Positions 3,125-40,308 of a stretch of DNA of 64,000 bases are shown here, in pieces; within the stretch, counting starts at the first letter, position 1, and every line of letters begins with the position of its first letter. The notes beneath the pieces were generated by a model that ran no database searches, had not been told where the DNA came from, and worked only from the letters and a program-made list of their open reading frames with translations. The DNA lies in the IMG/VR virus record IMGVR_UViG_3300036766_000194, positions 186,001 through 250,000 of that record; one strand, written 5' to 3'. Made by a program: the position numbers and the translations under genes.

Positions 3125-3853
3125 TCATGCTGCCTGAACCACCAAACCGAATTCACGACCGATTTGCTGGGTAGAAATAAGACGAGTGGTGAGAGGCATA
3201 GACTTCATAGCTTCGGTGAAGGCGTTATGGAGAGACCAGGCATTGCGAGGCTGGAACTCCAGGTGACGCGGCTCAAAGTACTCGTGGCTAACGTCATTGA
3301 AAAGCCTTACGGGAAGAATCTTTTTGACGAAGATATCGTGAATCATCGCCTTGGCTTCCAGGTCACCCAATTCGCGAGCCTGAAGATTATTTACTTCGAT
3401 CTTGAGATTGGCATAGTGCTCTTCAAACTTCGCAACGGCCAGGTTGAGTTCCTGAACCAGATTCAGTCCGGAAGTGTGACGACGATCCATGGCAACGAAA
3501 TCACCATTAAGAGCCAGATTGTCGCAAACGAAGACGCGGAGACCAGCGACGATTTGTAGAGCCATAGAGCGGTCGTTCGCTTGACGGAAACCCATTGCGG
3601 CGCAGGTATCGGGAACACCGTTGAGGGAGAGATCGAAAGTTCCAAAGAGGCGGGAACCGTCAGCGCGAATGGCATACTGCTCGCGCTCGATGGTGATGTT
3701 GCGCTTGCTCAGTGCCAATTCCATCGTCTCGACAAGCTCGATATGCGGAACGGGCTTGAAAGTTTCGGTGGCAACAGGCATGGGAATGTTGCGAAGTTGA
3801 TCGCGGGAAACCAGGGTGGTATCTTTGTGGGCGGAAAGGACTGCTTGACTCAT
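3125..3853 (-). CDS. DUF932/DUF945-family phage/plasmid protein
   Basis: P.ATETFKPVPHIELV and ANDRSMALQIVAGLRVFVCDNLAL motifs; strong SD (CAGGAGGA). Confidence 0.85.
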   Translation of the reverse strand: MSQAVLSAHKDTTLVSRDQLRNIPMPVATETFKPVPHIELVETMELALSKRNITIEREQYAIRADGSRLFGTFDLSLNGVPDTCAAMGFRQANDRSMALQIVAGLRVFVCDNLALNGDFVAMDRRHTSGLNLVQELNLAVAKFEEHYANLKIEVNNLQARELGDLEAKAMIHDIFVKKILPVRLFNDVSHEYFEPRHLEFQPRNAWSLHNAFTEAMKSMPLTTRLISTQQIGREFGLVVQAA

Positions 3854-3957: not shown

Positions 3958-4689
3958 TTACCTATTAGCGCGGGAAGTGAAGAGATGATCAAAGTGAGGG
4001 TTGGTTATGTCCACGCGAAATTCTCCCAATATTTCCGGATCACGACGGTAAATGTGGCACTGCTTTGCCAACTTTCTCTTACTGAATCCTTGCCCACTGG
4101 CACTCGCCTTGTCAATCAGACCGTGAATGAAAGCTCCCAAAGCGGCTTCATCACCACTTTTAGAATCATTCAACTGTTTTGCTGCTCTACTCATAGCGCG
4201 GCGAATGTCGGGACGATGTAAATTGTATGCGTCGGACACCTTTTGAAAGGATCGCGTCTGTTCATACATCTTTATTACTTTAGAAAGTTCCACTCCACTT
4301 GTTTGGTCTCTCTTAACAGTGTTTTCAAGCCCCGCTTTGGTTAGAATCTCGTGCATGATTTCTATGGTAGGCTCTCCCAAGAGAAGGAACGTTCCCAGTT
4401 TCTTTATCGCCATGCGGATATAGAAAGAACAAGCCGTCTGGGTGGACTTATGTATCTCGGCTAAGATGTTCTGGGTCTTACTTAACATGTAATAGGAGAG
4501 GAGCAGTTCTTGATCTTCTTTGGAAAGGTAACGGATCATCTTGAGGAACTTGGCGAAGTTTTCTTGTATGTAGGTAAAAATATCATCTTCTGCCAAATCT
4601 CCTTGAGTTTCAAGTGAAATTGTAGTATTACCAGCTAACGCCTCTTCTTCGGTCAACAACATACTGCGTTGCGCCGTGATTGAGTCCAT
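3958..4689 (-). CDS. Sigma-70 region-4-like double-HTH protein (candidate phage sigma factor or regulator)
   Basis: LSKEDQELLLSYY..SKTQNILAEIHKSTQTACSFYIRMAIKKL resembles sigma region 4; second HTH RSFQKVSDAYNLHRPDIRRAMSRA. Confidence 0.6.
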   Translation of the reverse strand: MDSITAQRSMLLTEEEALAGNTTISLETQGDLAEDDIFTYIQENFAKFLKMIRYLSKEDQELLLSYYMLSKTQNILAEIHKSTQTACSFYIRMAIKKLGTFLLLGEPTIEIMHEILTKAGLENTVKRDQTSGVELSKVIKMYEQTRSFQKVSDAYNLHRPDIRRAMSRAAKQLNDSKSGDEAALGAFIHGLIDKASASGQGFSKRKLAKQCHIYRRDPEILGEFRVDITNPHFDHLFTSRANR

Positions 4690-4719: not shown

Positions 4720-5253
4720 TTACGTCACATCCCCTTTCAACAGATTGTTGGATTTTAGACCTTGAATCTTTGCTCTAGCAGATTGCGCGGCGCGGCGTTC
4801 TTGCGTCCAAGATTCTAGAGGATAGGTTTTCTTGAACTTGTAAGTCTTTCCCAAATTCCAGGGAATACTCCCCAGTTTAGGTCCTGTCTTTTTGCAGGAC
4901 TTGAGTCTGCGTGCCACCCACGCAGTCCGTTGCTTCGCTCGGGTTTCCTCACTCGCCTTGACGCCCTTACGATTATTCCGTCCACCCTCAGCCTGATTGT
5001 ACTCGGCCAACGTCCCCAACCAATTGATGAAACGAATTTCCAGGAAGTCCAATTCCTCAAGGGAGACCGCTCTCGCTATCTCTTTAATAGCAAAACTTTC
5101 CACTCCATACTTGCGGATCGCTTTATGCAGGACAGCTTGGCCTCCGCCATTGGCTGTGCAAACGTGATCCCGCCAGCGCGTAGCGAGGTCAAAGGTTGTC
5201 TGACCGACATAACGCTTTCCATTGGCAAGATTTTCTATGAGATAAATAACCAT
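4720..5253 (-). CDS. GIY-YIG homing endonuclease with NUMOD3
   Basis: VIYLIENLANGKRYVGQT...RWRDH; YNQAEGG; SEETRAK. Confidence 0.9.
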   Translation of the reverse strand: MVIYLIENLANGKRYVGQTTFDLATRWRDHVCTANGGGQAVLHKAIRKYGVESFAIKEIARAVSLEELDFLEIRFINWLGTLAEYNQAEGGRNNRKGVKASEETRAKQRTAWVARRLKSCKKTGPKLGSIPWNLGKTYKFKKTYPLESWTQERRAAQSARAKIQGLKSNNLLKGDVT

Positions 5254-5798: not shown

Positions 5799-8700
5799 CT
5801 ATGTGCTGTACATTTGTTCTGCGGCCCAACTCTCAAAACGCATAGCAGGATAACTATCAGGTCCAGGAGTTTCCCCGCGCATGGCCCAACTAAATCTTTT
5901 ACCACTATGATCGGGGTCTAAATCGGGGAATACTTTCTTTGCTTCGGTCAAGTTAGGGAACATTTGATACCCGTGTCCGTTAGGTGTAATTTCTCCATCC
6001 TTAACGCCGACCACTTGAACAGCCATAGTGTCCCGGCTATAGCCCCTTGTTTCAAGGTCATTTAACCAATTTGGAGCAGCCCTTTTCCCTCCAGCAGCAA
6101 GGCTTTGTCTGCCGCTGAAGTTACTTGGGGCGGCGGAGATTAGAAAAGCTGACTTCCAACAAGCCTTCTTGCCGAACGGAACGCCAGCCTTATCGAATAC
6201 GTCTTGAAGATACTCGATTCCAACCTCTTTAGTTCCAAGCCTTGCTGCTGCCTGGGTCTTATCACGCCCTGGCTTTTCTCCAACGATCAACACCTGTGTG
6301 GAGCGGGTGACGCTTCCATGGGCAACAGCACCTAGATTCACCAATTTCTTGGTGATCTCATCGCGCTTTTCCGGAAACACCCCGGTAATACAAAAGGTTA
6401 TACCGGATAGAATTTGTTTAGGAGCTTCACCACTCTGGTCCTCCGAAGCGGGAGCATGTGGACTGAGCTTGCTCTTACGGCCAGCAATGACATCAGACAT
6501 TTGCTTCAAGTCGCCCACCATCTGAGAGCGCGAATACTTTGCATCGTTTAGTTTCGTGACAATCAGAGCCAGATTGTCACCCGTGTATTCCTCGGCCTTA
6601 GCGAAATCGCTCTTTTGGAAATCGTAGAAAAGTTTCCCCTGTGTTTGTCCCACAACACCAATGGCGCGAATAACACTCTCATCATCAGCAATGTTGGGAT
6701 ATGCGATAGCACCCTTACCATACCACAACATGCGATCCCCAACGAGGCTAAGTAGATCGGAGCGTGAGAAGTTATAAATACGCTTAGTCCAAACATCCTT
6801 CATGCCCGGAGTGCCCACAGAAACGTTGGCATCCGCAAGAGGCTCCCAATGATTACGAGGAGGAGCGTTTTCCCACATACCGTCGGAGAGTTGTCCCATT
6901 ATCTCCCCATACCACAACCAAACCTGTGTTTTGTTTTCGAAATGAATTTGTCCATGTCCATAGTACTCGTACCTTTTCGTAGACGAAAATTTGTGGTAAC
7001 GCCGATACTGAGCTTCCCAGTCAGGAAGTTCCATAAGACTATTCATACCTTCAGTATCTGTGAAATAAGAAGGATCTTGTCCAGGATTCTGTAATAACTG
7101 TTCAAACGCAGAGATAAGATCTTCCTTAGAAATAAAAGAATAATATCCTTCTGCCGCAGCCGCAGCTACATATCTAGGTTCTGACTCAAACACGTCCGCA
7201 AATTCTTGTAATGTTTTAGGAGCGATTTTTAATGGGGCTACTCTAATTGTACCCGCGCCTCCATACCCCCCTTCCCAAAAAATGGCGATGAAGTTAGCAG
7301 GCATCTTTTCAAGAATATCCAAAGATTTACTTATAAGATTCGGAGTCCCATACCAAGTTAATTGTGTTAAGTTAGGATAGTCTTGATCACTATCACCCTC
7401 ATCAGCTGTGAGTTTATTTGAACTAGTTAAAGGCTTTCCATGACGATCCCAAGGACCAGGATTATCCGCGTGCTCTCCGGGTGAAGTATCTCTATCAACT
7501 ATTTCATCAAACCCCTTGTTGCAAGAGTGACAATAGTATTTGTTAGGCAGATTATGACTCGGGTCTTCCAAATAAATAGGACTATGACCGCAAAGAGGAC
7601 ATTGTGAGTTTACAAGTTGACCACCGCTAATATCTGCTTCAGACACGGCCATAAAGTTAGAAAAATTTCCCGTATTACCACACCCTTGACAGACGTCTAT
7701 GTAAGATCCGTCTTGAGGAAGAACCTGTATCTGATCACTACCGCAGTTAGTACAATGCTTACCGCGTTTGGCGGATTCTTTATCCTCAGAAGTTATCATC
7801 AATTCGTCTGCGTCTTCAAGAATACCACCGGAATCGTGTACTAATTCCTCAATCTTACCTTTGTAGCTACGAGGGATAGTCAAGGTGTCACCTTCCCATT
7901 CTACATAACGTCCATATCTACCCATAACTGCGTTATAAGCCTTTTCACGCTCAGGTTCTGGTTCTATACGTCCTTCGCCAGCGGAAGTAACTGGACGCCC
8001 GTGACGGCGATTATACTCATCTTTATTTCGTTTTAGAGCTTCTTGTAGCTCAGGATCTTTGGGTGTTTCAGAATCGTCAAGTTGTTTCCCTAGATCAGCG
8101 CGTAGTTTTTCTAACTCTTCTTCATTACCACTTGTCTTATTTCTACTTTCTTCTTGTTGCTGTCTAGAAACAATCCAAAGAACTATTTGAGAAAGTGTTA
8201 TATCAGGCATCGCCGAAAGCTCTTCTTCCGTCCAGATTCCGCCTCCTCCTTCCTTGATAAAACGAATAGCTTCTTCACGAGGAACGTTAAAACCTAATTC
8301 TTTTTGCCACCATCTCACTGCATAATAGGCGATGAAAGGTTGAGATAGATCACTTAGACATTTCTTGGGCAATTGGTCATATTCTCCACCGTGAACACCC
8401 CAATTAGAACCCTCTGCTCCGTGCTTAACAGGAAGAATTTCAGGAGCAACAGTGCGTTGGGGTTGCTGTTGTTGCATTTGCCCTGGCTGAACGGTACGGA
8501 GAGAAGGCATCTTAGATTTATCTTGTAACTCTTGTTTAGCAGGATCTAACACTTGAACGGGACTCCCGCTCGTGTTAGGCTGCTGATTAGCATAGGGGTC
8601 CGTTGCGGACTGCTTTTCTTCTACAGCAGCTAAAGTAAGAGATGATGCTTTAGGTTCAGAAACTACTTCATCCTTACGTTTCTTTCGTAGAACATTCATT

Positions 8701-9893
8701 AGAAGTTGTACGAATTCAAAACTCTTTTCAAGTTCTGGATTTTCGTCAACAAAAGTTTCTACGTTGTTGACTAATTCACGAACATATTGCTTAAAGGCAT
8801 CATGAGAAAGTCCGGTTCTTTTCATCCACTCATCAGCATACATTCTACGGCTACTATGAGAAGATTTGGTATCCTCGCGAGCATCACGCAACATCAAACT
8901 GAACAGTAATTTGTAATTCTTAGCCTGCTGAGGCTTGTACTTCTTATCTATCCAATCATTAAAGAGTTTAGAGAAACGGGATATGTCTTCCCACTGCATA
9001 GTTTCTTCTACTTCTGGTTGTGTTGCGTGCTCGGGAATGTCAAGAATATTTGTGGTGAGATCACCCTCAGGATTTCTCATTCCTCCCCTACTAGGACTCG
9101 ATGTACTAGCAGACTCGTCCGTCTCCTTAAACATAGGAACAGTACCACCATAGGGCTTAACATCTTTGGAATGACATTTAGGACAATTTAAACTTTCTTT
9201 TGAACTTCCAGAAAAGAAAGTTTTTCCACAGTCTTCGCACTTGTATCGACGACCCGAAGGAGTATCTACACTCTGACTCAAACGACGGAGATTATCCACA
9301 GCATCACTATAGCGCCAAGAAAACAGAGTTTTTAGATATTCAGTGACTCTTTTTTCAAGAGGCTTGTCTTTATATTGTTGAAGAGGTTTCCAACTATTCA
9401 TAGCCTCTTCAAACTTACTAAGAGCATTACGGTCCCAAAGTTCCTTGATAATAATTTCCTGAGCAGCTTCTCGTATCAGTTCTTTATCATGAACATTGGT
9501 GTTACTATACAATCGGGATAGGTATGTCGTATTAAACCAACCATCCCAGTTCATCTTGGGATCAATAGGCATGCCCGCTTGTTTTAGTGCTTCATGGACA
9601 ATCACAGAAAACTTTAGACTAGCACAGAAACGAAATCTGGCCGCTATTCTGGCGAATAGAGGTGACAGCGGAACCATCGCTGCAAATTTTTCTGCGGTTA
9701 GATTTATAGGTTGCCCAGCTAAGTTAGTGACGCACAGAACGGTCTTATTGGAACTCGTAACCTTAGCGGTTACGCGGAACACAGGACCAGCTAGGGTATG
9801 AACGATGTCCCCAGTTTCTAACTTGGCGAGCTTTCTAAGATCTACCGCTTGTAGTTCAGCGCCTACTATTTTGTTCAAAATGTTAAAGTTCAT
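5799..9893 (-). CDS. 1364-aa mosaic protein: sigma-like helical region with a Zn-ribbon insert, further Zn ribbons, LigA-type BRCT domain
   Basis: CEDCG...CPKCH, CTNCG...CQGCG and CPLCG...CHSCN ribbons; LSGITFCITGVFPEKRDEITKKLVNLGA...GSVTRSTQVLIVGEKPGRDKTQAAARLG matches BRCT. Confidence 0.8.
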   Translation of the reverse strand: MNFNILNKIVGAELQAVDLRKLAKLETGDIVHTLAGPVFRVTAKVTSSNKTVLCVTNLAGQPINLTAEKFAAMVPLSPLFARIAARFRFCASLKFSVIVHEALKQAGMPIDPKMNWDGWFNTTYLSRLYSNTNVHDKELIREAAQEIIIKELWDRNALSKFEEAMNSWKPLQQYKDKPLEKRVTEYLKTLFSWRYSDAVDNLRRLSQSVDTPSGRRYKCEDCGKTFFSGSSKESLNCPKCHSKDVKPYGGTVPMFKETDESASTSSPSRGGMRNPEGDLTTNILDIPEHATQPEVEETMQWEDISRFSKLFNDWIDKKYKPQQAKNYKLLFSLMLRDAREDTKSSHSSRRMYADEWMKRTGLSHDAFKQYVRELVNNVETFVDENPELEKSFEFVQLLMNVLRKKRKDEVVSEPKASSLTLAAVEEKQSATDPYANQQPNTSGSPVQVLDPAKQELQDKSKMPSLRTVQPGQMQQQQPQRTVAPEILPVKHGAEGSNWGVHGGEYDQLPKKCLSDLSQPFIAYYAVRWWQKELGFNVPREEAIRFIKEGGGGIWTEEELSAMPDITLSQIVLWIVSRQQQEESRNKTSGNEEELEKLRADLGKQLDDSETPKDPELQEALKRNKDEYNRRHGRPVTSAGEGRIEPEPEREKAYNAVMGRYGRYVEWEGDTLTIPRSYKGKIEELVHDSGGILEDADELMITSEDKESAKRGKHCTNCGSDQIQVLPQDGSYIDVCQGCGNTGNFSNFMAVSEADISGGQLVNSQCPLCGHSPIYLEDPSHNLPNKYYCHSCNKGFDEIVDRDTSPGEHADNPGPWDRHGKPLTSSNKLTADEGDSDQDYPNLTQLTWYGTPNLISKSLDILEKMPANFIAIFWEGGYGGAGTIRVAPLKIAPKTLQEFADVFESEPRYVAAAAAEGYYSFISKEDLISAFEQLLQNPGQDPSYFTDTEGMNSLMELPDWEAQYRRYHKFSSTKRYEYYGHGQIHFENKTQVWLWYGEIMGQLSDGMWENAPPRNHWEPLADANVSVGTPGMKDVWTKRIYNFSRSDLLSLVGDRMLWYGKGAIAYPNIADDESVIRAIGVVGQTQGKLFYDFQKSDFAKAEEYTGDNLALIVTKLNDAKYSRSQMVGDLKQMSDVIAGRKSKLSPHAPASEDQSGEAPKQILSGITFCITGVFPEKRDEITKKLVNLGAVAHGSVTRSTQVLIVGEKPGRDKTQAAARLGTKEVGIEYLQDVFDKAGVPFGKKACWKSAFLISAAPSNFSGRQSLAAGGKRAAPNWLNDLETRGYSRDTMAVQVVGVKDGEITPNGHGYQMFPNLTEAKKVFPDLDPDHSGKRFSWAMRGETPGPDSYPAMRFESWAAEQMYST

Positions 9894-10576
9894 GTTTGAG
9901 CCTTCTTATGAGGATTCGGCATTGGGTATTTATCTAGATTACGCAATCTCGATTCACGAAGTTTAGCGCGGGTTTCAAGAGTGTGCGTTTTCCCAAAGAA
10001 ATGATTCTTTTCACCTTTCACTGAATCACGTTGTTTATTACAAGATTCTTGACTACGGGTTAGTCCTATATGAGAATCGCGAAGTTTATGTAAAGTTTCC
10101 TCACTAGCTTTTTTACCAAGACGACCATTATGGATAGCTTTTAGTCCTTCAGGAGTATGGTTAGGATGACTTCCTGTCATCTTTTTTGTGAAATTTTCAC
10201 GGATTTCTGATAGTGTCCACATTTTTCTAGAAGCAGTCGCGATCTTCTCTTTTGTTTTTGAAGTGTGAGGTCCCGTGAAACCTTCTCCGCCACGACAAAT
10301 ATTATAACCGATGTCGGGATGCTGAGATTTCAAACTTTTTATGAGCAACTTCTCGTACTCGCAGATTTCTCGATTAGTTTGACCTTCAAAAAGAGGGAAA
10401 ATGTGAAAATGCTCAGGACCGTATTTGCGGATAGCCTTATAAAGATGGGAACGCAAAGACACGTAGTGTTTTGCGTCGTAAAATTTCTGCTTCAGGTATC
10501 GGGTTAAGCAGGACCCTGTAGTCTTACCGATGTAGATTTTCCAAGTTACATCACAAACAATTAGGTATACAAACAC
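9890..10576 (-). CDS. GIY-YIG homing endonuclease with NUMOD3 repeats
   Basis: VYLIVCDVTWKIYIGKT; GYNICRGGEG; HTSKTKEKI, SEETLHKL, HTLETRAKL. Confidence 0.9.
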   Translation of the reverse strand: MFVYLIVCDVTWKIYIGKTTGSCLTRYLKQKFYDAKHYVSLRSHLYKAIRKYGPEHFHIFPLFEGQTNREICEYEKLLIKSLKSQHPDIGYNICRGGEGFTGPHTSKTKEKIATASRKMWTLSEIRENFTKKMTGSHPNHTPEGLKAIHNGRLGKKASEETLHKLRDSHIGLTRSQESCNKQRDSVKGEKNHFFGKTHTLETRAKLRESRLRNLDKYPMPNPHKKAQT

Positions 10577-12639: not shown

Positions 12640-13062
12640 TTAAAGCAATTTGTCAAACACCCCGGCATTCATCAGTCTGTGTAATTCAGCCATAAATTTA
12701 CGTCCATGATCATCGAATTCAGGGTACGAACTTACATGACACATCTCATGAATTAGGGTAAGTTCCGTTTGATTAGGAGTGAGGTTATGTTTGGGATTAA
12801 TCTCAATGATAAATACCCCATTTTCATAAGAAGTAAATCCTGTATATTCGTCACTACCACCATAGCGAATTATCACTTTATTAGGCAATTTGGAAGAGAA
12901 GTATTTTTTGTTGTTATTCTTATACATTTCTTGTAATTCTATAATAGAAGGAGAATCAGAAGAACAAGCTGAAGGGGGTATCCTGCTGACAATATCAGTG
13001 TTTCCAATGCTAAGGACCATTAGAATTACTGTCGTAATTATAAATAATAAAATCTTTAACAT
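12640..13062 (-). CDS. SprT-like zinc metalloprotease with an N-terminal hydrophobic segment
   Basis: TLIHEMCHV...DDHGRKF. Confidence 0.8.
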   Translation of the reverse strand: MLKILLFIITTVILMVLSIGNTDIVSRIPPSACSSDSPSIIELQEMYKNNNKKYFSSKLPNKVIIRYGGSDEYTGFTSYENGVFIIEINPKHNLTPNQTELTLIHEMCHVSSYPEFDDHGRKFMAELHRLMNAGVFDKLL

Positions 13063-13070
13063 TTGTACCC

Positions 13071-13397
13071 CTATGTGTACCCTAGCGGATGAGGATTTCC
13101 TTCACCATAAAATGTGACAATTGTCTTGGTTAAATCACGTCCTAAATTTATACCATTGATAAGCATTTTACGCATAACAAGAGCCTTAACATAACGACGA
13201 TATTCGCTTATTGTCATGTCGCCTTTGTCATTGTTACAACTCCAACAAGCGGGGAGTAGATTATAATCCAAATTCCTACCTCCACGCGAGCGAGGTTTGG
13301 CGTGATCAATTGTATCGGCATAGTGTCCGCAGTACCAACAACGACCACGGCACTTATACATAGTGCGCATCCACTTAATTTTAGGCACGCGAGACAC
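13071..13397 (-). CDS. HNH endonuclease
   Basis: CWYCG...TIDHAKPRSRGG...NLLPACWSCNNDKG. Confidence 0.9.
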   Translation of the reverse strand: MSRVPKIKWMRTMYKCRGRCWYCGHYADTIDHAKPRSRGGRNLDYNLLPACWSCNNDKGDMTISEYRRYVKALVMRKMLINGINLGRDLTKTIVTFYGEGNPHPLGYT

Positions 13398-13946: not shown

Positions 13947-14924
13947 TTAGCGGTCAGAAGTACCTACTCCAGAACCCGTACCAGTTGTTGCGCCACGGGT
14001 GATGAGCACGCGTTGAACTCCGCTCGGGTTGAATACGAGGAAGCCCAGGTTCTCGAAGATCGAGAAACCGATCTGACGAAGGTCAGGACGATCTGCCGAC
14101 ATAACCGTTAGAGGGATACGCTCAGGGATAACGCCAAGGAACTCTGCGTCTGCCAGAACATAAAATGTGCCGTAGCCAATTTTACGAGACTGGAGAAGCG
14201 TTGCGCCCCAGAGATAACCCATAACACCCGTCTTGAGCAGCTTGCGCTGAGTTTCACGGTCGATGTTAGCATCTGTCCACTTGAGCAAGTCAGCATAGTC
14301 GCGGGGGTTGAAGAAGACATAAGCGATAGACAGGTCGTGACGAGTAACCTGAGCAAAGCTATCTGCCATCTGGCTCACCGAGACTGGTGCTGTGATTGTC
14401 TGGTCGATGTTGTAGACGTAGTCGTTTACGTTGGAGCCAGCTGCAGCGTTAGCTGCTACTGCCACACCATCAAACAACTGGAATACATAAGCATCTTCCT
14501 GTGCGCCAACTTCTGCCTTAGCAAGGTTGAGCGCACGGGCGACCAAGTCAAAACGGCGTTCTTTGATCTGCGTGATCGGAATCATCGGGTTAGAGACGAT
14601 TTCGAACGTAGGAACGGTTACGCGCTTTGGCTTTGTGACGGAAACGATGTCTCCACCCTCTTCACCAACTACGAATGCCTCAACGAACGAGCCACCCTGT
14701 AAATCGGTGTTGACGGATCCACTGACATCAAATTCCTTGTCGTAGATCGGGAGTGCGCCATCAGGAAGCGTCTCGACCATGAGTGCCTTACGTGCGATAC
14801 TCATATAGTCGCGACGACGGCGGAGTGAAGGACCCAACGATGCGGCCAACTTCTGACGTCCACCTGCGGTCTTGAGCAACTGCCCAAGCATTGCGGTTTG
14901 CTGCTGTGTTCTAGAAAGATTCAT
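13947..14924 (-). CDS. Major capsid protein
   Basis: RRRRDYMSIARKALMVETLPDGALPIYDKE and VTVPTFEIVSNPMI motifs of a large-phage MCP family; follows protease, scaffold and decoration genes; terminator downstream. Confidence 0.85.
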   Translation of the reverse strand: MNLSRTQQQTAMLGQLLKTAGGRQKLAASLGPSLRRRRDYMSIARKALMVETLPDGALPIYDKEFDVSGSVNTDLQGGSFVEAFVVGEEGGDIVSVTKPKRVTVPTFEIVSNPMIPITQIKERRFDLVARALNLAKAEVGAQEDAYVFQLFDGVAVAANAAAGSNVNDYVYNIDQTITAPVSVSQMADSFAQVTRHDLSIAYVFFNPRDYADLLKWTDANIDRETQRKLLKTGVMGYLWGATLLQSRKIGYGTFYVLADAEFLGVIPERIPLTVMSADRPDLRQIGFSIFENLGFLVFNPSGVQRVLITRGATTGTGSGVGTSDR

Positions 14925-15610: not shown

Positions 15611-16216
15611 ATGTCCTTAGTGTATCTAATACATTGCACGCTTTCTAAAAAACCTTATATTGGGCAAACTATTCAATCTCTAAAAGATAGGTGGAAAGGG
15701 CACTGCTCCGATGCCCGAGCAGGGTCAAAAACTCATTTAGCTAATGCTATTCGCAAGTATGGAGCAAATGCATTTGAATTGTCCGTAGTATGTGAGGGTG
15801 AATTCACACAGCAAGAATTAGATAATCTAGAAAAACTCTGGATCATAGTGTTAAATGCACATGAAACGGTGGGAGGATATAATCAAACTTGGGGAGGAAC
15901 TAGTAATGCAGGATATTGGCATAGGGGCAAAAAGCGTTCTCCAAAAACCTGTGAAAAAATCAGAAAAGCTAAATTAGGAAACAAAAATCCGATGTTTGGG
16001 AAAAAGAATCCAAAAGGCTCTTTTTCAGCAACTAATAATCCTATGAAAGGAAAACGTAAATCTAAGGCATGGAAACAAAAAGTAAGCAAAATCATGTCAC
16101 ATCCAAGAACTCTTGAACATTACCAGGCTGTTCTATTAGGTAGAAGATCAAAAGGTCAGCACATCAAAAAAGAAGTTTGTAAAAAATATCAAATTTCTTA
16201 TCTAGACAAATACTAA
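15611..16216 (+). CDS. GIY-YIG homing endonuclease with NUMOD3, antisense to the head operon
   Basis: LVYLIHCTLSKKPYIGQT...RWKGH; GYNQTWGG; SPKTCEKI; NPMFGK. Confidence 0.9.
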   Translation: MSLVYLIHCTLSKKPYIGQTIQSLKDRWKGHCSDARAGSKTHLANAIRKYGANAFELSVVCEGEFTQQELDNLEKLWIIVLNAHETVGGYNQTWGGTSNAGYWHRGKKRSPKTCEKIRKAKLGNKNPMFGKKNPKGSFSATNNPMKGKRKSKAWKQKVSKIMSHPRTLEHYQAVLLGRRSKGQHIKKEVCKKYQISYLDKY

Positions 16217-18947: not shown

Positions 18948-19817
18948 TTACTTCAATTTAGAAGCTATTTCACTCATTTCCAGCATTAAATCTTCATGTT
19001 CACTAACACTAGCTGCTTTTGCGAACTTGGATTCCTTATCAGATTCAGCAGAAGCCGTAGTATAAGGAGTCTTAGGACCAATCCACTCTTCCATGACTGT
19101 ATTACGTTTAACCGCCCCTGGAAAAGCGGGAGTAGCAACCCAAGAAGCCTCAACGAATTTGACTCCACCATTTTTCATTGTCTTATGGCCACAAAGTTCT
19201 GCCACACGACGGGGAACGCCATTTTCATCGTTTAAAAAAGAACCTTTTTGAAAAGCCAAGTGATTACAGTAATTTCCATTATCGGTAACTCTTGCCCCGC
19301 AAAAAGAACAAATTACCAAGTCTGTAACACAACCCATGCTCAGATACTTGACTTTGCCTGAACGGATGTCGTCAATCAACTGTGTGTGTGCAAGGTCAGT
19401 GGCTACCAAGATGTCAACTAAATAAACCCACACTCCAGAAGCAATATTTATCTTACGAAGAATCGCATCCAAAATATGCCCCTTAGCGAATTTTGAGTTT
19501 TGAAAGTGTTCAACGAAGTTAAATGCTCCTACAAATGACTTATGAGACAACTTTAAGACTTCATTAGTCCAGGCATCGTCATTGTTGTTGACAAGATGGC
19601 TGCATTCTGGCTTGATAAAATAGTCATTAGGATCATCCTCTACCATGACAGAACTCATGATTGTGCAGTGTGATAAAAGATAGATACTTTTATCTGCTTT
19701 GGCTGCTATTTTTAAAAACGATGAGGAATTTGAGAAATTAGAATACAATGTATTCCAGTCTCTAATGTTGATAACTGGGTCGGCTACTAAGGCACGTGCT
19801 GTTTTGATAAAAGGCAT
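18948..19817 (-). CDS. Prohead (capsid maturation) protease with Zn ribbon
   Basis: NNNDDAW, FVEHFQ..KGHILDA, LSMGC (candidate catalytic Ser), CSFCG...CNHL, FVEASWVATPAFPGA; canonical gene position. Confidence 0.75.
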   Translation of the reverse strand: MPFIKTARALVADPVINIRDWNTLYSNFSNSSSFLKIAAKADKSIYLLSHCTIMSSVMVEDDPNDYFIKPECSHLVNNNDDAWTNEVLKLSHKSFVGAFNFVEHFQNSKFAKGHILDAILRKINIASGVWVYLVDILVATDLAHTQLIDDIRSGKVKYLSMGCVTDLVICSFCGARVTDNGNYCNHLAFQKGSFLNDENGVPRRVAELCGHKTMKNGGVKFVEASWVATPAFPGAVKRNTVMEEWIGPKTPYTTASAESDKESKFAKAASVSEHEDLMLEMSEIASKLK

Positions 19818-25885: not shown

Positions 25886-28800
25886 TTACAGGTTTGTAGT
25901 AACCGTGAACGTTACGCTGATGTAAAGCAGGCTGAAGATAGGCTTAAAGCTAACCGTGATATCCAACAACGTCGGATCGTTAGGATCCGGAACCACAGAT
26001 AGATTCTTATAGCCGGAAATAATCTCCTGATTTACCAATATGCGTAACAGAGAGTTACATACAGCTGTTACATCATTGACGAGTGTTCCTACGAACTTAC
26101 GTCCAATAAACTGATCCAGAGCGGTGCGGAACTGTTGACGAACATAATCCGTAACCGTTGTAGATGTTGGTTCAGAAGTAAGAACATTAGAATTATCCGT
26201 AGACATATAATGACGAACCTTTAGTGCGCCATTGTTTTCCACCAGCAGGGTTAACCCATCAGCTGCCATTAAGTCCAGAGTAGGTTCATCAAGGCGTGTT
26301 CCGAGCAAGCGGCTGAAGCCAACAACTTGTTGATTTGTCAAAGTTGTTGCTACGTCATTCGCGGGGTTCACATTCAAACCTGCTAAAGCAGCTGCTAGGA
26401 AAGGACCATCTACAGCATACTCAGTTGCTGCAGCAGTAGATTGTGTAGCCTGTAGAAGAATTCCAGCCACAGAAGGAGCTACTGCGATAATACGGCTATT
26501 CTTAAAGCTGCGTGCTGCTTGACGTGCTGCTGAAGGAGTGGTATACTGGTCAAACCCAACGAATCCAATACCTTCCGCCTGAATACGGGGAGCAGCCTGA
26601 GTTATCAAGAAGCGACTCAAGAACTGCTGTACCGTAGAACTGGTACTGAGAGGTACGATTACCGAAGCAAATGAAGAGCTACCCGGTAACGGGGATGCTA
26701 AAGACTGGATTGCGTTGATAAATGACTGATCCGAAGCAACTGGAGTTCCGGTCTGTTTTGGAACTTGAATGACTCCAAACTGCTGTGCACCGTTTTCTGT
26801 TAACAGAGAAATACCCAAGGACACACGGTTGGTTGTGTTAGGAGTTCCGTAGACTTTGTAAGCATCTGAAGCATTGGTGTAGAGTTGAAGAGCAAAATCG
26901 CTGGCTTGTTTTGCTGTCTCAAAGGTTAGGTAGTAAAACTGTCCATTGTTAGGGTTGCTACCAGACTTATTAAATGTGGCAACAGTTGCTGTATCTGTAG
27001 GATTCATTCCAAATGTCGTAGACACAGAAGTTCTCAAACCACCTAGCACAATGACAGGAGTTACTCCCGTTACAAATGGAGAGTCCTTACTATCTTCCAG
27101 AAGGAAGGTAATTTTGTCTCCTGGAGCAAAAGAGTACGCTGGGCTAGGAAGTGTCGTATATCCGTAAGGTAGAGCATTACGAGGGTCTACGATTGTGAAC
27201 TTCACCGCAGTGTTAGGATCCAGGTAGGTTTCTCCTAAGTAGCTAGAGAGACCAAAAACGGGTCCGACGAACTGCCATGTAATAGCTGTGTAAGGAGACA
27301 CACTACCATCCACGGTGTTTCCAGCACTACCCCAAGTAGGTGCTGCTGCTCCAGAAGTACCCGGAACGATAACTTTCTGTATATTTCCGTTGGTATCAAC
27401 TACGGTATCATTGGTTGAGAAAGCTGTTAGGGCTGCCCATAGCTTTGAAGCAGCATTTACATATGCTGGTGTTGTTGCGTTTCCAGTACGACCTAATCCA
27501 TCGGCTGCTGTCTGTGTTGAAGTACGGCTGGAGGACACAACATAACGATTTGCTATTGCTGCAGTAACTTGAGCCGTTCCGCTAGAGAAAGCCACTAATG
27601 CGTGAGCGATTGACAAGTCAGTTGTTATACCTGCTCCTAATGAAGCCAGTATCTGACCAGCAAGAGGAGTGGTTACAATGTTTCCACTGAAGCCCGTGAC
27701 ACCTGTGAAGAGATTGATAATTCCACTTAATGTTAGAGCACCTGTAGTTGCAGATATGTTGACAAAAACTTGCTCTACAGTAGTAGGAGCTAGACCGTTA
27801 GAAGTCCAAGTAACTCCACTATCTGAGGTTGTGACTCCCGCAGTCGCACTGAATCCCCCTGGAATAGTTCCACCAGAAGTTCCAGCCACCGTTACAACTT
27901 GGATGCTAGTTCCAGTTATGATGATTTGACCCGCGACATAAGCGTGATTTGATTGCCAAGAAGCAAATGCTGTTGCGACTCCTGTGCTACCCGAGAAAGT
28001 TCCTGCGCTCGTATAAACTGTGTAAGCGGGAAGAATAGGTTGAGTACCATTGCCAACCATTGTGATGCTTGTGGTAGCGTTGGGTCCTGTTCCTGTGGTT
28101 GTAGCCGTAAATAGTAGAGAATCGGAGCCTGTTTGAGCCACAGAGGCTGTTGCCTGAGTTGCAGGGGTGACGATACGAGTATGACCATCCTGTTGAAAGG
28201 TCAATGTAAGGGTTTCATCAGGTCCACCAATACCTCCCTCGATGTCGGGGAAACTAAAGGGCCAAACGATTCCTGTGGTAGCGAAACTTCCATCAGTAAC
28301 CGAAGTTCCGGTTGATCCTGCGGCGGTTCCTGTAACCTTGATAATAGAACTTCCTGTTTCACTTACTACCGAATAAGTTCCTTGTCCAGGAGTGTTGGCA
28401 TTAACAACAGACAACGTAAATGTGTGGTCATTAAGAATCGTACGATAGCCACTTACATAAACTTTGCTGCTTGCTGCAGGAGGATTGTAAAGTGTAATTA
28501 CTCCTGTAGCTCCAACAAGACGGGAAACCGTAACTGCTCCTGCTGCTTGTGCAGAAGCAGGGTCGATGCCGACATACACTAAAATCTTGCTAGGATCATC
28601 GGTTACTTTTGCCAGACCACTACCGTCTACGGGAGTGAATGCAGAAGTAAATACAGCATTGACGCCGTCAGCAACTCCAGTAGCCGGAACCATGTAGACG
28701 TTTTCGTCTACCAAGGTTGTAGTTATCTGGGTAGCACTTAAAGGAGTGAATCCTGCTGTCTGCTTACCAATTGAGGTAACGGCAGCGGCACCCCAATAGA

Positions 28801-29941
28801 TTTTATTGTTAGCTAAAACATAGTCCACACCATTGATGTAGTCAGCACGTCCAGGACCAAGTCCTACACGATCTATTTGAACTATGTTATTTGCTGGTAG
28901 AAGATCAAAAGTATTCTGCCAGTTATTTGTATAATAAGTGACAGTTAAGGTAGACCCGAAAGTTACCCCAGTTGCTAACGTAACCAGACCGTGAGCACCA
29001 TCTACAGTGGTAACAGTTGCGGCTACTCCATTAACCTTGACTTGAACATCGGCAGTGTTTGTAGTTACGACTCCGCCGTTGGTCCCGTCTACTATAGGTG
29101 TAAAATGAGTCTTAAACACAGTGTTGGTAGAAGGCCCAGCACCACCCGAAAGGAAGGCAGCGGTATTAGCAACACCTACTGTGGTATCAATAGAACTTCC
29201 TGTTAGATACCCTTGAGAAGTAGGAATACCAGCAGCAATTAAATTGCTAATGTCCGTTAGGGTTCTGACCGATACGTTATCAGCCTTCAGAAGTTCAATG
29301 CTGATATTAGCGGTTCCTGCTCCTGTTACGGCTGTTACGTCAGACTTACCGTTAACCGGGGAAGTGGACAAAGTAAAAGTCACATTGACCAAATTACCCA
29401 GTTTACCAGGAGTATTTATACCAATTACAATGGAATGTCCTACAGCCGGAGTATAGGTCAGGCTTGCAAAAGAAGGGATTTGAGCGGAAAGATCCTCATT
29501 TACCTTGTGAGTGTCCGAACGCTTGAAGAAATACGTTACTAAAAGAACTGCTCCTGCTGGGATAATTTGTTGAGTCTGAAAAGAACCCAAGGTACCGTTT
29601 AGAGACACGACCGTTACCGGGATACCGTTGCTTGTTACCTGTATCTTAGTGTAATCGTTAGTTACAGTTCCAGAACCATCCCCCGTTGTTATAGGGAAGT
29701 AGGTTACTTGGAAAGTACGGGTAAGTCCCGTTGCCTGAGCCGAAATATCTTCGTTAACAGACTGGTCATCAGCGGAAGCCGAAGAACCACGAAAGATCTC
29801 TTGATCAGAAAAAACGAAATTCTCAACACCTTCTCCGATGAGTACGGGAATTCGCGCAGTGCCAAATAACGGCGCGGATGTTGGAGCTAATACAACGCTA
29901 GTGTATACTCCCGGAGGTGCGTATGATTGAAATAGTGCCAT
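25886..29941 (-). CDS. Contractile tail sheath protein with large inserted beta domains
   Basis: N-terminal YAPPGVY...RIPVLIGEG; C-terminal TDYVRQQFRTALDQFIGRK...DPTLLDITVSFKPIFSLLYISVTFTV. Confidence 0.9.
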   Translation of the reverse strand: MALFQSYAPPGVYTSVVLAPTSAPLFGTARIPVLIGEGVENFVFSDQEIFRGSSASADDQSVNEDISAQATGLTRTFQVTYFPITTGDGSGTVTNDYTKIQVTSNGIPVTVVSLNGTLGSFQTQQIIPAGAVLLVTYFFKRSDTHKVNEDLSAQIPSFASLTYTPAVGHSIVIGINTPGKLGNLVNVTFTLSTSPVNGKSDVTAVTGAGTANISIELLKADNVSVRTLTDISNLIAAGIPTSQGYLTGSSIDTTVGVANTAAFLSGGAGPSTNTVFKTHFTPIVDGTNGGVVTTNTADVQVKVNGVAATVTTVDGAHGLVTLATGVTFGSTLTVTYYTNNWQNTFDLLPANNIVQIDRVGLGPGRADYINGVDYVLANNKIYWGAAAVTSIGKQTAGFTPLSATQITTTLVDENVYMVPATGVADGVNAVFTSAFTPVDGSGLAKVTDDPSKILVYVGIDPASAQAAGAVTVSRLVGATGVITLYNPPAASSKVYVSGYRTILNDHTFTLSVVNANTPGQGTYSVVSETGSSIIKVTGTAAGSTGTSVTDGSFATTGIVWPFSFPDIEGGIGGPDETLTLTFQQDGHTRIVTPATQATASVAQTGSDSLLFTATTTGTGPNATTSITMVGNGTQPILPAYTVYTSAGTFSGSTGVATAFASWQSNHAYVAGQIIITGTSIQVVTVAGTSGGTIPGGFSATAGVTTSDSGVTWTSNGLAPTTVEQVFVNISATTGALTLSGIINLFTGVTGFSGNIVTTPLAGQILASLGAGITTDLSIAHALVAFSSGTAQVTAAIANRYVVSSSRTSTQTAADGLGRTGNATTPAYVNAASKLWAALTAFSTNDTVVDTNGNIQKVIVPGTSGAAAPTWGSAGNTVDGSVSPYTAITWQFVGPVFGLSSYLGETYLDPNTAVKFTIVDPRNALPYGYTTLPSPAYSFAPGDKITFLLEDSKDSPFVTGVTPVIVLGGLRTSVSTTFGMNPTDTATVATFNKSGSNPNNGQFYYLTFETAKQASDFALQLYTNASDAYKVYGTPNTTNRVSLGISLLTENGAQQFGVIQVPKQTGTPVASDQSFINAIQSLASPLPGSSSFASVIVPLSTSSTVQQFLSRFLITQAAPRIQAEGIGFVGFDQYTTPSAARQAARSFKNSRIIAVAPSVAGILLQATQSTAAATEYAVDGPFLAAALAGLNVNPANDVATTLTNQQVVGFSRLLGTRLDEPTLDLMAADGLTLLVENNGALKVRHYMSTDNSNVLTSEPTSTTVTDYVRQQFRTALDQFIGRKFVGTLVNDVTAVCNSLLRILVNQEIISGYKNLSVVPDPNDPTLLDITVSFKPIFSLLYISVTFTVTTNL

Positions 29942-38913: not shown

Positions 38914-40308
38914 TCATATTTTAGCCAACTCCCTAATTTCGTCTAGGGTCTGAATACGCTTCATCTCCCCGTTGCGGAAGACCAGTTCAAGTTGGTCAAA
39001 AGGAACACCATTACCATAAGTATCCGGAATTGTAACCCAATGACCTCCTAGTTGCTTGAGAAGAGCCAGACGACCACCCTTGCTGGCCTTGCCTTTATCG
39101 GTGACTGGATCCTTGCTAACCGGGGTATCTACTCCGTCAATAACCGCATTACAAAGTTTAATGGCAACCTTCTGAGTATCACGATTGACCTTTTGAAGCA
39201 GACCGCCTCCCATGCCATTGACTATGTTTTCAGTGCTCCAGTGAAAGTTCCTAATAGCACAAAGAAGTCCCTGAATAGAATATAGGTCCATACCATCTCC
39301 CCAGAGTGTACCAATACAAGGGGCGAGAACTTTATAGGACTTGGAATTTTCACGAAATCCAAAACACTCCCCAAAGATGTCGAACAACTGGGGAACTTGG
39401 GTAATAGGATCACCTGAGTCGGGACGGGCTACAACTTTTCCCTCTCGATTACGGATAATATCCCGATATTGATGACCAAGGATTTCCTTACAGAAATTGA
39501 AGATGTTGTAGGAATCCCCCACGAGACTAATGATTCCCTTGGGATACTTTCTTAATGCCGCGCCAACTTGTTCCGCTTCTCCATTACGGCCCTTGATAGT
39601 AAACATGGAGTGCTCTGTGGCAGGAACGCTATACCCAGAAACTCGGGGGGCACCATAGTACTGATGGAGATAATCCATGGCAATTTTAGTATCGGTGCCT
39701 AGAAAATTAATCAAATGGGCCGCACCGCCGCGAGCCGCCGCCTGAGTTCCCGTAGCCCCTCTAAATCCAAAGTCATGAAGTTGAAAGGGGAGCGCCGACA
39801 GGTCATCTGCGGTTTCTAGCAAAAACCGATGATAAATTTCCTTTGCCATGCGGCTCTTTGTAGCAACTGCGGTTGTATACCAGACATGTTGAAGAACGGT
39901 TTCCGCCCATTGACCAATCCAAGGTACCCGCTTATCTGTGGATTTAATGGTGTAAAGAACATTGCCGACAGGAACGACGCTGCCTTCCTTAACGGCTCGA
40001 ATTTCCATTGGTAGACGTCCGTTGTAGGTATCTAGGATATACTTCCAGTCGTCGTAATGGTAGGGAAAACCTGCGCCAAAATGCTGCTGGGAGTTCTCAT
40101 ACTCTTCATTCAGATCGTCCAGAGTAAAGAATTCACCCTCGAATTCCTCCATTAAAATTCCCTGTAACCCGAAGAATTCCGTGTACGGATACTCTCCTCC
40201 GCGAGCTTCAAAATACGATAGAAGTTCCGTAATCTCTGGTCCGTAGAAATGTGTATCTTTGTAGCTATCCGCTTTACGAAGAGGATTGGGTTTAAACGGA
40301 GTGGGCAT
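38914..40308 (-). CDS. nadV: Nicotinamide phosphoribosyltransferase (NAMPT)
   Basis: DSYK, FFGLQ, LHDFGFRG, HLINFLGTD, SVPATEHS, SLVGDSY, RPDSGDP, WGDG, FGMGG-like NGMGGGLLQKVNRDT. Confidence 0.95.
   Translation of the reverse strand: MPTPFKPNPLRKADSYKDTHFYGPEITELLSYFEARGGEYPYTEFFGLQGILMEEFEGEFFTLDDLNEEYENSQQHFGAGFPYHYDDWKYILDTYNGRLPMEIRAVKEGSVVPVGNVLYTIKSTDKRVPWIGQWAETVLQHVWYTTAVATKSRMAKEIYHRFLLETADDLSALPFQLHDFGFRGATGTQAAARGGAAHLINFLGTDTKIAMDYLHQYYGAPRVSGYSVPATEHSMFTIKGRNGEAEQVGAALRKYPKGIISLVGDSYNIFNFCKEILGHQYRDIIRNREGKVVARPDSGDPITQVPQLFDIFGECFGFRENSKSYKVLAPCIGTLWGDGMDLYSIQGLLCAIRNFHWSTENIVNGMGGGLLQKVNRDTQKVAIKLCNAVIDGVDTPVSKDPVTDKGKASKGGRLALLKQLGGHWVTIPDTYGNGVPFDQLELVFRNGEMKRIQTLDEIRELAKI

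Follow-up and report, generated by a model that had tools for sequence, protein, structure and literature searches.

The question raised by the locus studied here is what kind of protein a jumbo phage makes from a single open reading frame (ORF) of 1364 amino acids (aa) lying downstream of its head genes. The ORF, P0001, is contained in a 64,000-nucleotide (nt) stretch of DNA, hereafter the window, that comprises positions 186,001 to 250,000 of virus record IMGVR_UViG_3300036766_000194. It runs uninterrupted across 5799..9893, as a previous sequence-only reading had reported, and is encoded on the minus strand, which that reading left unsaid (ATG at 9893, stop codon at 5799-5801; all features of P0001 given below are likewise on the minus strand). 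Our preferred answer, held tentatively and at a little under an even chance, is that P0001 represents a new family of polyvalent 'carrier plus cargo' proteins encoded in the head module of Tunturi_5-like jumbo phages, whose packaging and cleavage we infer. The phage genome holding the window is of the jumbo myovirus type, 299,875 bp long with direct terminal repeats, and comes from a sediment metagenome record; tail-sheath, baseplate, helicase, and nicotinamide phosphoribosyltransferase genes belong to the gene set of the window. The stretch was present wholly or in part in four sediment metagenomes from four studies, with only a small share of it in one. P0001 shares its strand with the genes for the major head protein, ~4 kb upstream (13947..14924, minus strand; phrog_2522, E 6e-44), and the head maturation protease, ~9 kb upstream (18948..19817, minus strand; phrog_18299, E 3.5e-18). 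The protease was identified by the PHROG model only, with no Pfam S77/S78 match in the genome and no sequence relative in the PDB. Identity of the major head protein was 70% to that of Tunturiibacter phage Tunturi_5 (309 kb), 49% to that of an uncultured 485-kb phage, 34% to gp27 of Bacillus phage G, and 27% to those of cluster-C mycobacteriophages.

Searching aa 1-1150 of P0001 against 1.84 billion representative proteins with phmmer returned 841 hits at E<0.001, of which the best 150 were listed; protein comparisons covered 152 proteins. The matches formed three groups, corresponding to aa ~5-210 together with ~270-410, aa ~980-1140 (domain B), and aa 844-963 (module C). The first group defines a family through residues 1-413, an N-terminal domain (N-domain) of ~410 aa built from a Tudor-like barrel plus two helical subdomains, with both halves conserved. 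In the AlphaFold2 model the domain starts with a small beta-barrel of Tudor/SH3 type (aa 14-79; 9657..9854), followed by helical subdomain A1 (aa 80-208; 9270..9656, delimited by alignment and model) and, after an interruption, helical subdomain A2 (aa 286-413; 8655..9038, model helices 293-411). A1, common to 70 of the 152 proteins, was the best-conserved part of the family, with P109 invariant and W116 nearly so. The interruption holds Zn ribbon 1 (aa 214-250; 9144..9254; C219/C222 and C237/C240, recognized from its CxxC pairs and the model) and a linker. Together they span aa 205-285 and were confined to the five closest sequences, P0001 and four relatives, and since A2 directly follows A1 in most relatives, this segment is an insertion. 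The inserted Zn ribbon of the sequence-only reading was therefore real and lies between two conserved helical halves, but for the sigma regions said to flank it only a weak fold-level resemblance was seen. Among the matches listed, proteins of 115-1936 aa begin with the N-domain or carry it close to their start, with the exception of P0061, where it starts at residue 334. No Pfam or NCBIfam model covered the N-domain in the members tested, it had no PHROG match in P0001, and an ESM Atlas feature search with aa 1-420 and aa 843-968 gave no usable hit. Judged by sequence, the N-domain is a previously unannotated family of Tunturi_5-like jumbo phages.

Beyond the N-domain, fixed motifs are followed by variable sequence. 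The boundary region (aa 414-492; 8418..8654, defined by alignment) opens with PKASSLTLA (414-422), which contains the family-wide motif [ST]-S-L-x-L-A-[DE], and continues with a P/Q-rich linker, which in many members carries PNPNVQQQ, and with MPSLRT (462-467). It ends with RTVAPEILPVKHG (480-492), the P0001 counterpart of the family motif K/R-x-T-I-P-P-E-I-P-G-V-N-H (consensus TIPPEIPGVNH). Downstream of these motifs the sequence varied from protein to protein. Cargo of the relatives included ART-PolyVal (3.8e-14, one member), DMP19 (4.4e-9, three members), NUDIX (2.9e-7), and double zinc ribbons, and that of P0001 comprises three Zn ribbons, modules M1, M2, and C, domain B, a BRCT, and a C-terminal tail. 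The sole homolog in a cultured phage was Tunturi_5 gp345 (XOB77788.1, 667 aa), matched by the family hidden Markov model at E 2e-163 and 24.9% identical to P0001 over aa 23-230 (tblastn). The same model found no member in Bacillus phage G, LR745208, or mycobacteriophage I3, leaving Tunturi_5 as the only one of four capsid-related phages with the family.

A simple scan of order residues delimited five low-complexity linkers (aa 256-275, 421-451, 582-649, 799-836, and 1140-1157) and hence six blocks, and ~12 modules were obtained once subdomains from models and alignments were counted. The proposal of at least eight modules separated by low-complexity linkers thus held in outline, with its number reached through the subdomains, while the linker ends showed no regularity of the xA/xS kind that had been described. 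Following the boundary region, M1 (aa 493-581; 8151..8417) was matched, among the 152 proteins, in P0002 alone. A charged linker (aa 582-649; 7947..8150) bears the first copy of a junction motif, DPELQEALKRNKDEYNRRHGRPVTS, that is common to P0004 and the distantly related P0008, and M2 (aa 650-705; 7779..7946) matched P0004 elsewhere in that protein (56% over 52 aa). Zn ribbons 2 and 3 (aa 712-793; 7515..7760; C714/717 with C735/738 and C765/768 with C788/791) were read from their CxxC pairs, the former being common to P0003 (54% over 59 aa). Two CxxC knuckles 12-25 residues apart occur in three such pairs, in agreement with the three Zn ribbons seen earlier. Pfam backed the first alone, below cut-off (Zn_ribbon_8, E 0.0028; HypA, E 6.6e-4), and it was modeled as a three-stranded ribbon at residues 216-248 with a predicted local distance difference test (pLDDT) score of ~80-85. 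The next linker (aa 799-836; 7386..7499, from the scan and the motif) includes the second junction motif, WDRHGKPLTS (815-824). Module C, domain B, and the BRCT follow, and the C-terminal tail T (aa 1243-1364; 5802..6167) was again matched in P0002 alone among the 152 proteins.

Comparison of contigs revealed that this arrangement is in flux. The entire 4095-nt ORF lies within one 27-kb contig of run X1, and a near-identical 20.7-kb contig from a different study, run X2, has the same gene fusion and reads open throughout in spite of three in-frame indels. It lacks precisely 6975-7412, the 438 nt (146 codons) that delimit module C (aa ~828-973) by presence and absence in contigs, and carries an extra 3 nt after 6074 and an extra ~73-75 nt at 7947/7948, which correspond to a 25-aa in-frame insertion of P0002. 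P0002, a near-identical variant of 1244 aa from ENA, also has an open frame, lacks module C, and corresponds to the X2 form. Minor low-depth contigs of X2 and X3 carry module C, and both forms therefore coexist within X2; stand-alone homologs of the module were found in P0055 (40% identity) and P0151. Modules are exchanged, inserted, deleted, and fused over short evolutionary times, and the in-frame gain or loss of whole modules between strains found together shows that diversifying turnover of the cargo is ongoing. P0001 has two copies of the junction motif, W/Y-[DN]-R-(R)-H-G-[RK]-P-[VL]-T-S, at aa 630-637 and 817-824. The second copy immediately precedes the module C indel and in P0002 sits about ten residues before the start of domain B, and its kin in P0004 and P0008 occur, with M2, at other positions. 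As placed in these proteins, RHG[RK]P[VL]TS marks sites of module gain, loss, and fusion.

These contigs also decide whether P0001 exists as described. The genome is metagenome-assembled, and the joining of two genes that are separate in relatives (see below) could have arisen from an assembly or sequencing error; P0001 could also be a decaying pseudogene that merely reads open. Against a chimera or a pseudogene, which we find barely credible, all 4095 nt fall within the single X1 contig, the fusion and the frame recur in X2, every length change in X2 is a multiple of three and preserves the reading frame, and P0002 is open over its 1244 aa. Because an independent near-identical contig keeps the frame open across three in-frame indels, P0001 is not an assembly artefact. 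The N-terminus MNFNILN recurs in the relative P0003. No match to the ORF was found by megablast among 50,697 phage records, and a related-locus search of viral contigs with aa 1-440 as one protein yielded none that was confirmed.

Domain B (aa 975-1140; 6474..6971) was common to 81 of the 152 proteins. Among the matches listed, it occurred mostly as a stand-alone protein of ~160 aa, in dozens of clusters. Across 185,579 species genomes it was found on eight contigs only, seven of which belong to metagenome-assembled genomes. A model built from 74 sequences was confident (pLDDT 92.3, predicted template modeling score (pTM) 0.86), and no known fold was found for it by Foldseek (best E 0.07) or VIA (best Z 3.3), nor was there a Pfam or NCBIfam hit. 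Eight residues (E, G, S, D, G, W, L, and R) were invariant across the 74 sequences and many polar ones nearly so, within one loop-helix region with the motif E-x-x-G-Q-x-S-D-G-x-W-E-N-x-x-P-x-x-H, and this conserved region looks like a functional site. Domain B also occurs in a second family of giant metagenomic proteins (P0029, P0031, P0038, P0063, and P0077; 950-1521 aa), which has its own N-terminal region of ~275 aa (52-78% identical) and shuffled cargo, with domain B at five different positions; P0031 is encoded ~10 kb downstream of a capsid gene.

In P0001 and P0002, domain B and the BRCT form a unit that is fused in frame to the rest of the giant. In two related loci, L004 and L005, what corresponds to aa 981-1255 is encoded on its own, by a gene of 357 or 381 aa that comes immediately after the giant gene (identity 54% and 49%), and P0006 is a third free-standing form. 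Given that the B+BRCT unit is a separate downstream gene in two relatives, P0001 is a gene fusion, and the comparison indicates that it arose by in-frame fusion of this independent gene. No in-frame start codon was present at the fusion junction, which reads YYGHGQIHF.

The BRCT itself (aa 1153-1240; 6174..6437) was recognized by Pfam, PHROG, PDB, and NCBIfam matches. Residues 1160-1232 matched PF00533 at 40.6 bits against a cut-off of 21.3 (E 3e-10, model positions 4-77 of 78), and the region matched the PHROG 'NAD-dependent DNA ligase' at E 1.2e-11 (NAD, nicotinamide adenine dinucleotide) and the NCBIfam LigA equivalogs at 9e-10 to 6e-8, over their C-terminal ends. The best PDB sequences were Thermus LigA (1l7b, 2e-7; 1dgs, 8e-7) and human RFC1 (2k6g, 1.8e-6; also 2k7f), with Dpb11 and Rad4, representing tandem phosphopeptide-binding BRCTs, at only 0.07-0.7. 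The earlier call of an NAD-ligase-type BRCT is therefore well founded. That a BRCT detached from a ligase is unusual was a fair remark, yet overstated, as PHROGs hold short phage families that match the region (phrog_2561, 3498, and 3989) and relatives carry it in a free-standing gene of 326-381 aa. The genome's second BRCT belongs to a LigA-like ORF (G000:C1:118756-120837, plus strand) that also has adenylation and OB domains, and was 48% identical to that of P0001 over 98 aa (E 7e-23). Since this match is far closer in E-value than those to bacterial LigA in the PDB (E 2e-7), we infer that the BRCT was duplicated from the NAD ligase of this phage lineage. The BRCT of P0001 differs from those of LigA and RFC1, which it most resembles, in that no adenylation, OB, or HhH domain accompanies it and domain B precedes it; it is part of a giant ORF here and of the B+BRCT gene in relatives. 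The window further encodes a nicotinamide phosphoribosyltransferase (38914-40308, minus strand; phrog_448, E 6e-131), which suggests that phage NAD salvage backs its own NAD-dependent ligase. Literature searches for BRCT-bearing ejection proteins, or for a link to the phage G proteome, found nothing relevant.

Given that aa ~90-400 had been read, as a weak call, as region 2 of an extracytoplasmic function (ECF) sigma factor plus a region-4 helix-turn-helix (HTH), with a Zn ribbon between them, to be freed from a packaged polyprotein and to redirect host RNA polymerase, we scrutinized the N-domain for sigma kinship. Its AlphaFold2 model, made with 36 family sequences (mean pLDDT 78.9, pTM 0.64), has barrel strands at 30-66, helices at 78-206, the ribbon at 216-248, disorder at 250-285, and helices at 293-411. 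Structural comparison with VIA-align covered 48,161 chains, the tool's guide to chance matches being Z under 8, or under ~13 for helical bundles. For the barrel, the TraI translocation-signal domain (Z 6.5), the ERCC6-L2 Tudor domain (5.9), and the CarD N-domain (5.6) were best, all of them level with one another and within noise. Among the best 50 there were nine sigma or sigma-4-type chains at Z 5.0-5.7, again within noise, including region 4 of SigB and SigH (5.7 and 5.6). Four of the sigma chains aligned both helical halves collinearly: ECF SigL 6dv9_F (Z 5.3, 152 residues), Taq sigma-A 4xln_F (5.2), 9n9q_C (5.1), and 7vpd_F (5.0). These placements, and the resemblance of the barrel at similar Z to the RNA polymerase-binding Tudor domains of CarD, UvrD, and PcrA, are what speaks for a sigma factor. 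Against it, every Z lies under the chance guide and the two-domain alignments have a root-mean-square deviation of 22-25 A. Foldseek against the PDB and BFVD returned nothing below E 0.02 for the model: among the best 50 PDB rows there was no sigma and none below E 0.3, and BFVD gave one sub-threshold sigma-named row (E 0.064, probability 0.35).

Sequence methods agreed. No Pfam sigma family matched P0001 at E<=1 or 47 relatives at E<=0.1. Sigma70_r2 (PF04542) had no match anywhere in the genome, and the genome's matches to Sigma70_r4_2 (PF08281) were all in ORFs other than P0001. A profile of 36 family members found no sigma, and indeed nothing, among PDB sequences. With 13 ECF and seven group-3 sigma genes from five bacterial genomes as references, hhalign gave the N-domain, whole or in halves, P 0.14-0.6 (aa 80-210 against ECF sigmas, 0.18-0.48; aa 286-415 against sigma profiles, 0.14-0.3). 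Domain B, the negative control, scored no differently; group 3 against ECF served as positive control and reached E 1.9e-26. Homology to sigma factors is thus not supported by Pfam or by profile-profile comparison. What is left of the proposed sigma regions is a weak fold-level resemblance in the noise range, and a released sigma-like transcription factor found no support in Pfam, NCBIfam, or profile-profile tests. P0001 resembles sigma-70/ECF factors in having two helical subdomains in the same order, whose packing superposes on sigma-2 and sigma-4 at Z ~5, and differs from them in lacking sequence or profile similarity and in its extra barrel, its Zn ribbon, and ~950 more residues of cargo; on the model, aa 293-411 could have a sigma-4/HTH-like packing that is convergent or very remotely related. 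The real sigma-4-like ORF of the neighborhood is a separate gene, which also argues against placing that function in P0001, and we regard the sigma-factor reading as very unlikely. That gene, a 243-aa ORF at 3958-4689 (minus strand), four ORFs downstream of P0001, matched the region-4 end of TIGR02937 at E 4.2e-5, below cut-off, and positions 3-54 of 54 of Sigma70_r4_2 at E 0.015, the only sigma-like sequence signal in the neighborhood; it may encode a transcription regulator. Its positional counterpart in L013 had a faint Phage_antitermQ match.

A related possibility is that the N-domain is a virion-delivered, RNA polymerase-binding mimic of sigma-2/sigma-4 with no detectable sequence kinship, placed behind a CarD/UvrD-like barrel, that would tether exchangeable effectors to host RNA polymerase at infection. 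We know of no precedent for a packaged sigma-like adaptor and consider this highly improbable. Were it true, the effectors tethered by P0001 would be a domain of new fold and a BRCT that binds DNA ends, and those of other members an ADP-ribosyltransferase, a DNA mimic, or NUDIX.

Under the carrier-plus-cargo reading, P0001 would be made late together with the head proteins, its N-domain would serve as a carrier for incorporation into the capsid or exit from it, and its cargo would act in the newly infected cell, as Iyer et al. 2017 proposed for polyvalent proteins. The boundary and junction motifs would be the likeliest processing or docking sites, and the BRCT, by analogy with LigA and RFC1, would recruit domain B to nicks or 5'-phosphate termini, whether in host DNA or in the injected genome. 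Such an effector carrier fits because P0001 lies downstream of, and on the same strand as, the head protease and major capsid genes, because a conserved N-domain and boundary motifs precede hypervariable cargo that in relatives includes ART-PolyVal, DMP19, and NUDIX, and because RHG[RK]P[VL]TS sits where modules come, go, or fuse. Several observations weigh against it. In a regular-expression scan of the genome the boundary motifs occurred in P0001 alone and in no other head-gene product; as far as that scan tells, the head protease does not use them as its general recognition site, and this explanation of them was rejected. Phage G, I3, and LR745208 share the capsid type without the family, which is thus not a core head component. 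P0001 has none of the hallmark polyvalent domains in a Pfam scan (no MPTase, ART, or SNF2). In the Tunturi_5 paper, predictions by Phold and HHpred are given and mass spectrometry goes unmentioned, and the label 'virion structural protein' of gp345 appears, as far as that paper shows, to rest on computational annotation. A SprT-like peptidase encoded nearby, described below, has a hydrophobic N-terminus and may be unconnected with processing.

Two further readings keep P0001 functional but assign it elsewhere. It could be a non-packaged intracellular scaffold, in which BRCT, zinc ribbons, and an HTH-like N-domain organize replication, repair/recombination, or host takeover. The derivation of the BRCT from a replication ligase would suit this, as would the DUF932 protein, homing endonucleases, and sigma-4-like regulator nearby, one context in which stand-alone B proteins are encoded beside small ORFs and polymerase genes and not beside head genes, and the apparently computational origin of the family's only 'virion structural' label. 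The strand and run that P0001 shares with protease, capsid, and other head genes speak against it, as do the ART-PolyVal and DNA-mimic-like DMP19 of the relatives and the combination of a fixed head with variable cargo, a pattern of delivery systems; we consider such a scaffold unlikely, though worth keeping in view. Alternatively, P0001 might be a structural or internal head protein (inner-body, scaffold-like, or decoration) without effector role, whose modules vary under little constraint. Its head-module position, its long low-complexity linkers, and the restriction of the family to one phage group among the capsid-related phages searched are consistent with this. A protein of that kind is nevertheless hard to reconcile with the invariant and nearly invariant polar residues that domain B concentrates in one loop-helix region, with a BRCT that retains a clear ligase/RFC1-type sequence, and with the enzyme domains of relatives (ART and NUDIX), which argue for activity, and we judge it improbable.

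T4 IP proteins and Alt, and the inner-body proteins of phiKZ and 201phi2-1, are capsid-targeted internal proteins processed by the prohead protease. P0001 is similar to these in its conserved N-part, short motif, and variable C-part and in its location in a head module with a maturation protease. It differs in that its N-part is a folded multi-domain unit of 410 aa and no short targeting peptide, and in that its motif was not found in the other head proteins of the genome. Polyvalent proteins are predicted delivered effectors (Iyer, Burroughs, Anand, de Souza, Aravind 2017, J Bacteriol; PMC5512222), and ART-PolyVal (PF18760) is the Pfam name given to the polyvalent-protein ADP-ribosyltransferase. 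P0001 shares with them its very large size, many unrelated domains (~12 modules), phage origin, a gene beside late and structural genes of a portal/terminase-type phage, domains shuffled between relatives, and, through those relatives, ART-PolyVal (one) and DMP19 (three). Unlike them, it has neither the zincin-like MPTase that is the hub domain of the class nor named PolyVal/LPD Pfam domains, and its N-terminal carrier domain, domain B, and BRCT are not described there, the term 'BRCT' occurring 0 times in the text (PMC5512222). Tunturi_5 gp345 belongs to the same family and to the same phage group, as the 70% identical capsid protein indicates, but is half the length of P0001, lacks BRCT, domain B, and Zn ribbons, and is not encoded 4 kb from the capsid gene; its gene follows tail-fiber genes, near a DarB-like gene, toward the end of the record.

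Polyvalent phage proteins are already known; in the literature searched, no description was found of the carrier domain, of domain B, of a BRCT serving as cargo, or of in-frame module turnover. If the carrier-plus-cargo reading is true, P0001 belongs to a family of phage cargo carriers that is new and rather large, parts of which matched 841 representative clusters, and the combination of fixed head, fixed motifs, and free cargo would be a natural catalog of early-acting effectors of soil and sediment jumbo phages, which are poorly studied. Domain B, confidently modeled and widespread, has a motif of invariant polar residues and recurs in combination with a BRCT that would by analogy bind DNA ends, and this BRCT would have been copied out of a replication ligase into a different functional setting. 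SLxLA, PPEIPGVNH, and RHGxPxTS are precise candidate processing sites, and a cultured relative, Tunturi_5 on Tunturiibacter, exists.

The genes around P0001 form a minus-strand run. From the protease it proceeds through ORFs of 468 and 203 aa, separated by a plus-strand GIY-YIG gene, to the capsid gene, followed by a 141-aa ORF, an HNH endonuclease, a SprT-like HExxH protein, ORFs of 455, 109, and 72 aa, a GIY-YIG gene, and P0001. Two small ORFs, a second GIY-YIG endonuclease, the 243-aa ORF, and a DUF932 protein come after it. The same gene order was found in the P0002 contig, and the part around the giant gene also in L004, L005, and L013. The SprT-like zinc metallopeptidase (140 aa; 12640-13062, minus strand; HEMCH motif), 2.7 kb upstream of P0001 between the capsid gene and the giant gene, is conserved in the P0002 contig. 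Its first 20 residues are strongly hydrophobic, and it could be a processing peptidase acting in trans or else a membrane protein with no bearing on P0001. The DUF932 protein (3125-3853, minus strand; E 8.6e-9) is conserved, at an equivalent place, in L004, L005, and the P0002 contig.

Homing endonuclease genes are frequent here, with three GIY-YIG genes (4720-5253 and 9890-10576, minus strand; 15611-16216, plus strand) and one HNH gene (13071-13397, minus strand) within 12 kb of the head module, and the three GIY-YIG proteins are mutually only 28-37% identical. That at 9890..10576 is directly upstream of P0001, whose ATG overlaps its stop. A GIY-YIG gene in this position, overlapping the start of the giant gene, was present in every relative examined (L004:2194-2883; L005:2449-2961; L013:9475-10014), with identities to the window's protein of 67%, 31%, and 30%, respectively. 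A co-inherited partner was rejected, as the endonucleases there are of different lineages; the pattern looks like repeated homing into a hot-spot, the conserved 5' end of the giant gene, and not like inheritance of one gene. Elsewhere in the window, a 1351-aa ORF (25886-29941, minus strand) had a tail-sheath profile match in its last 335 residues only (aa 1015-1349).

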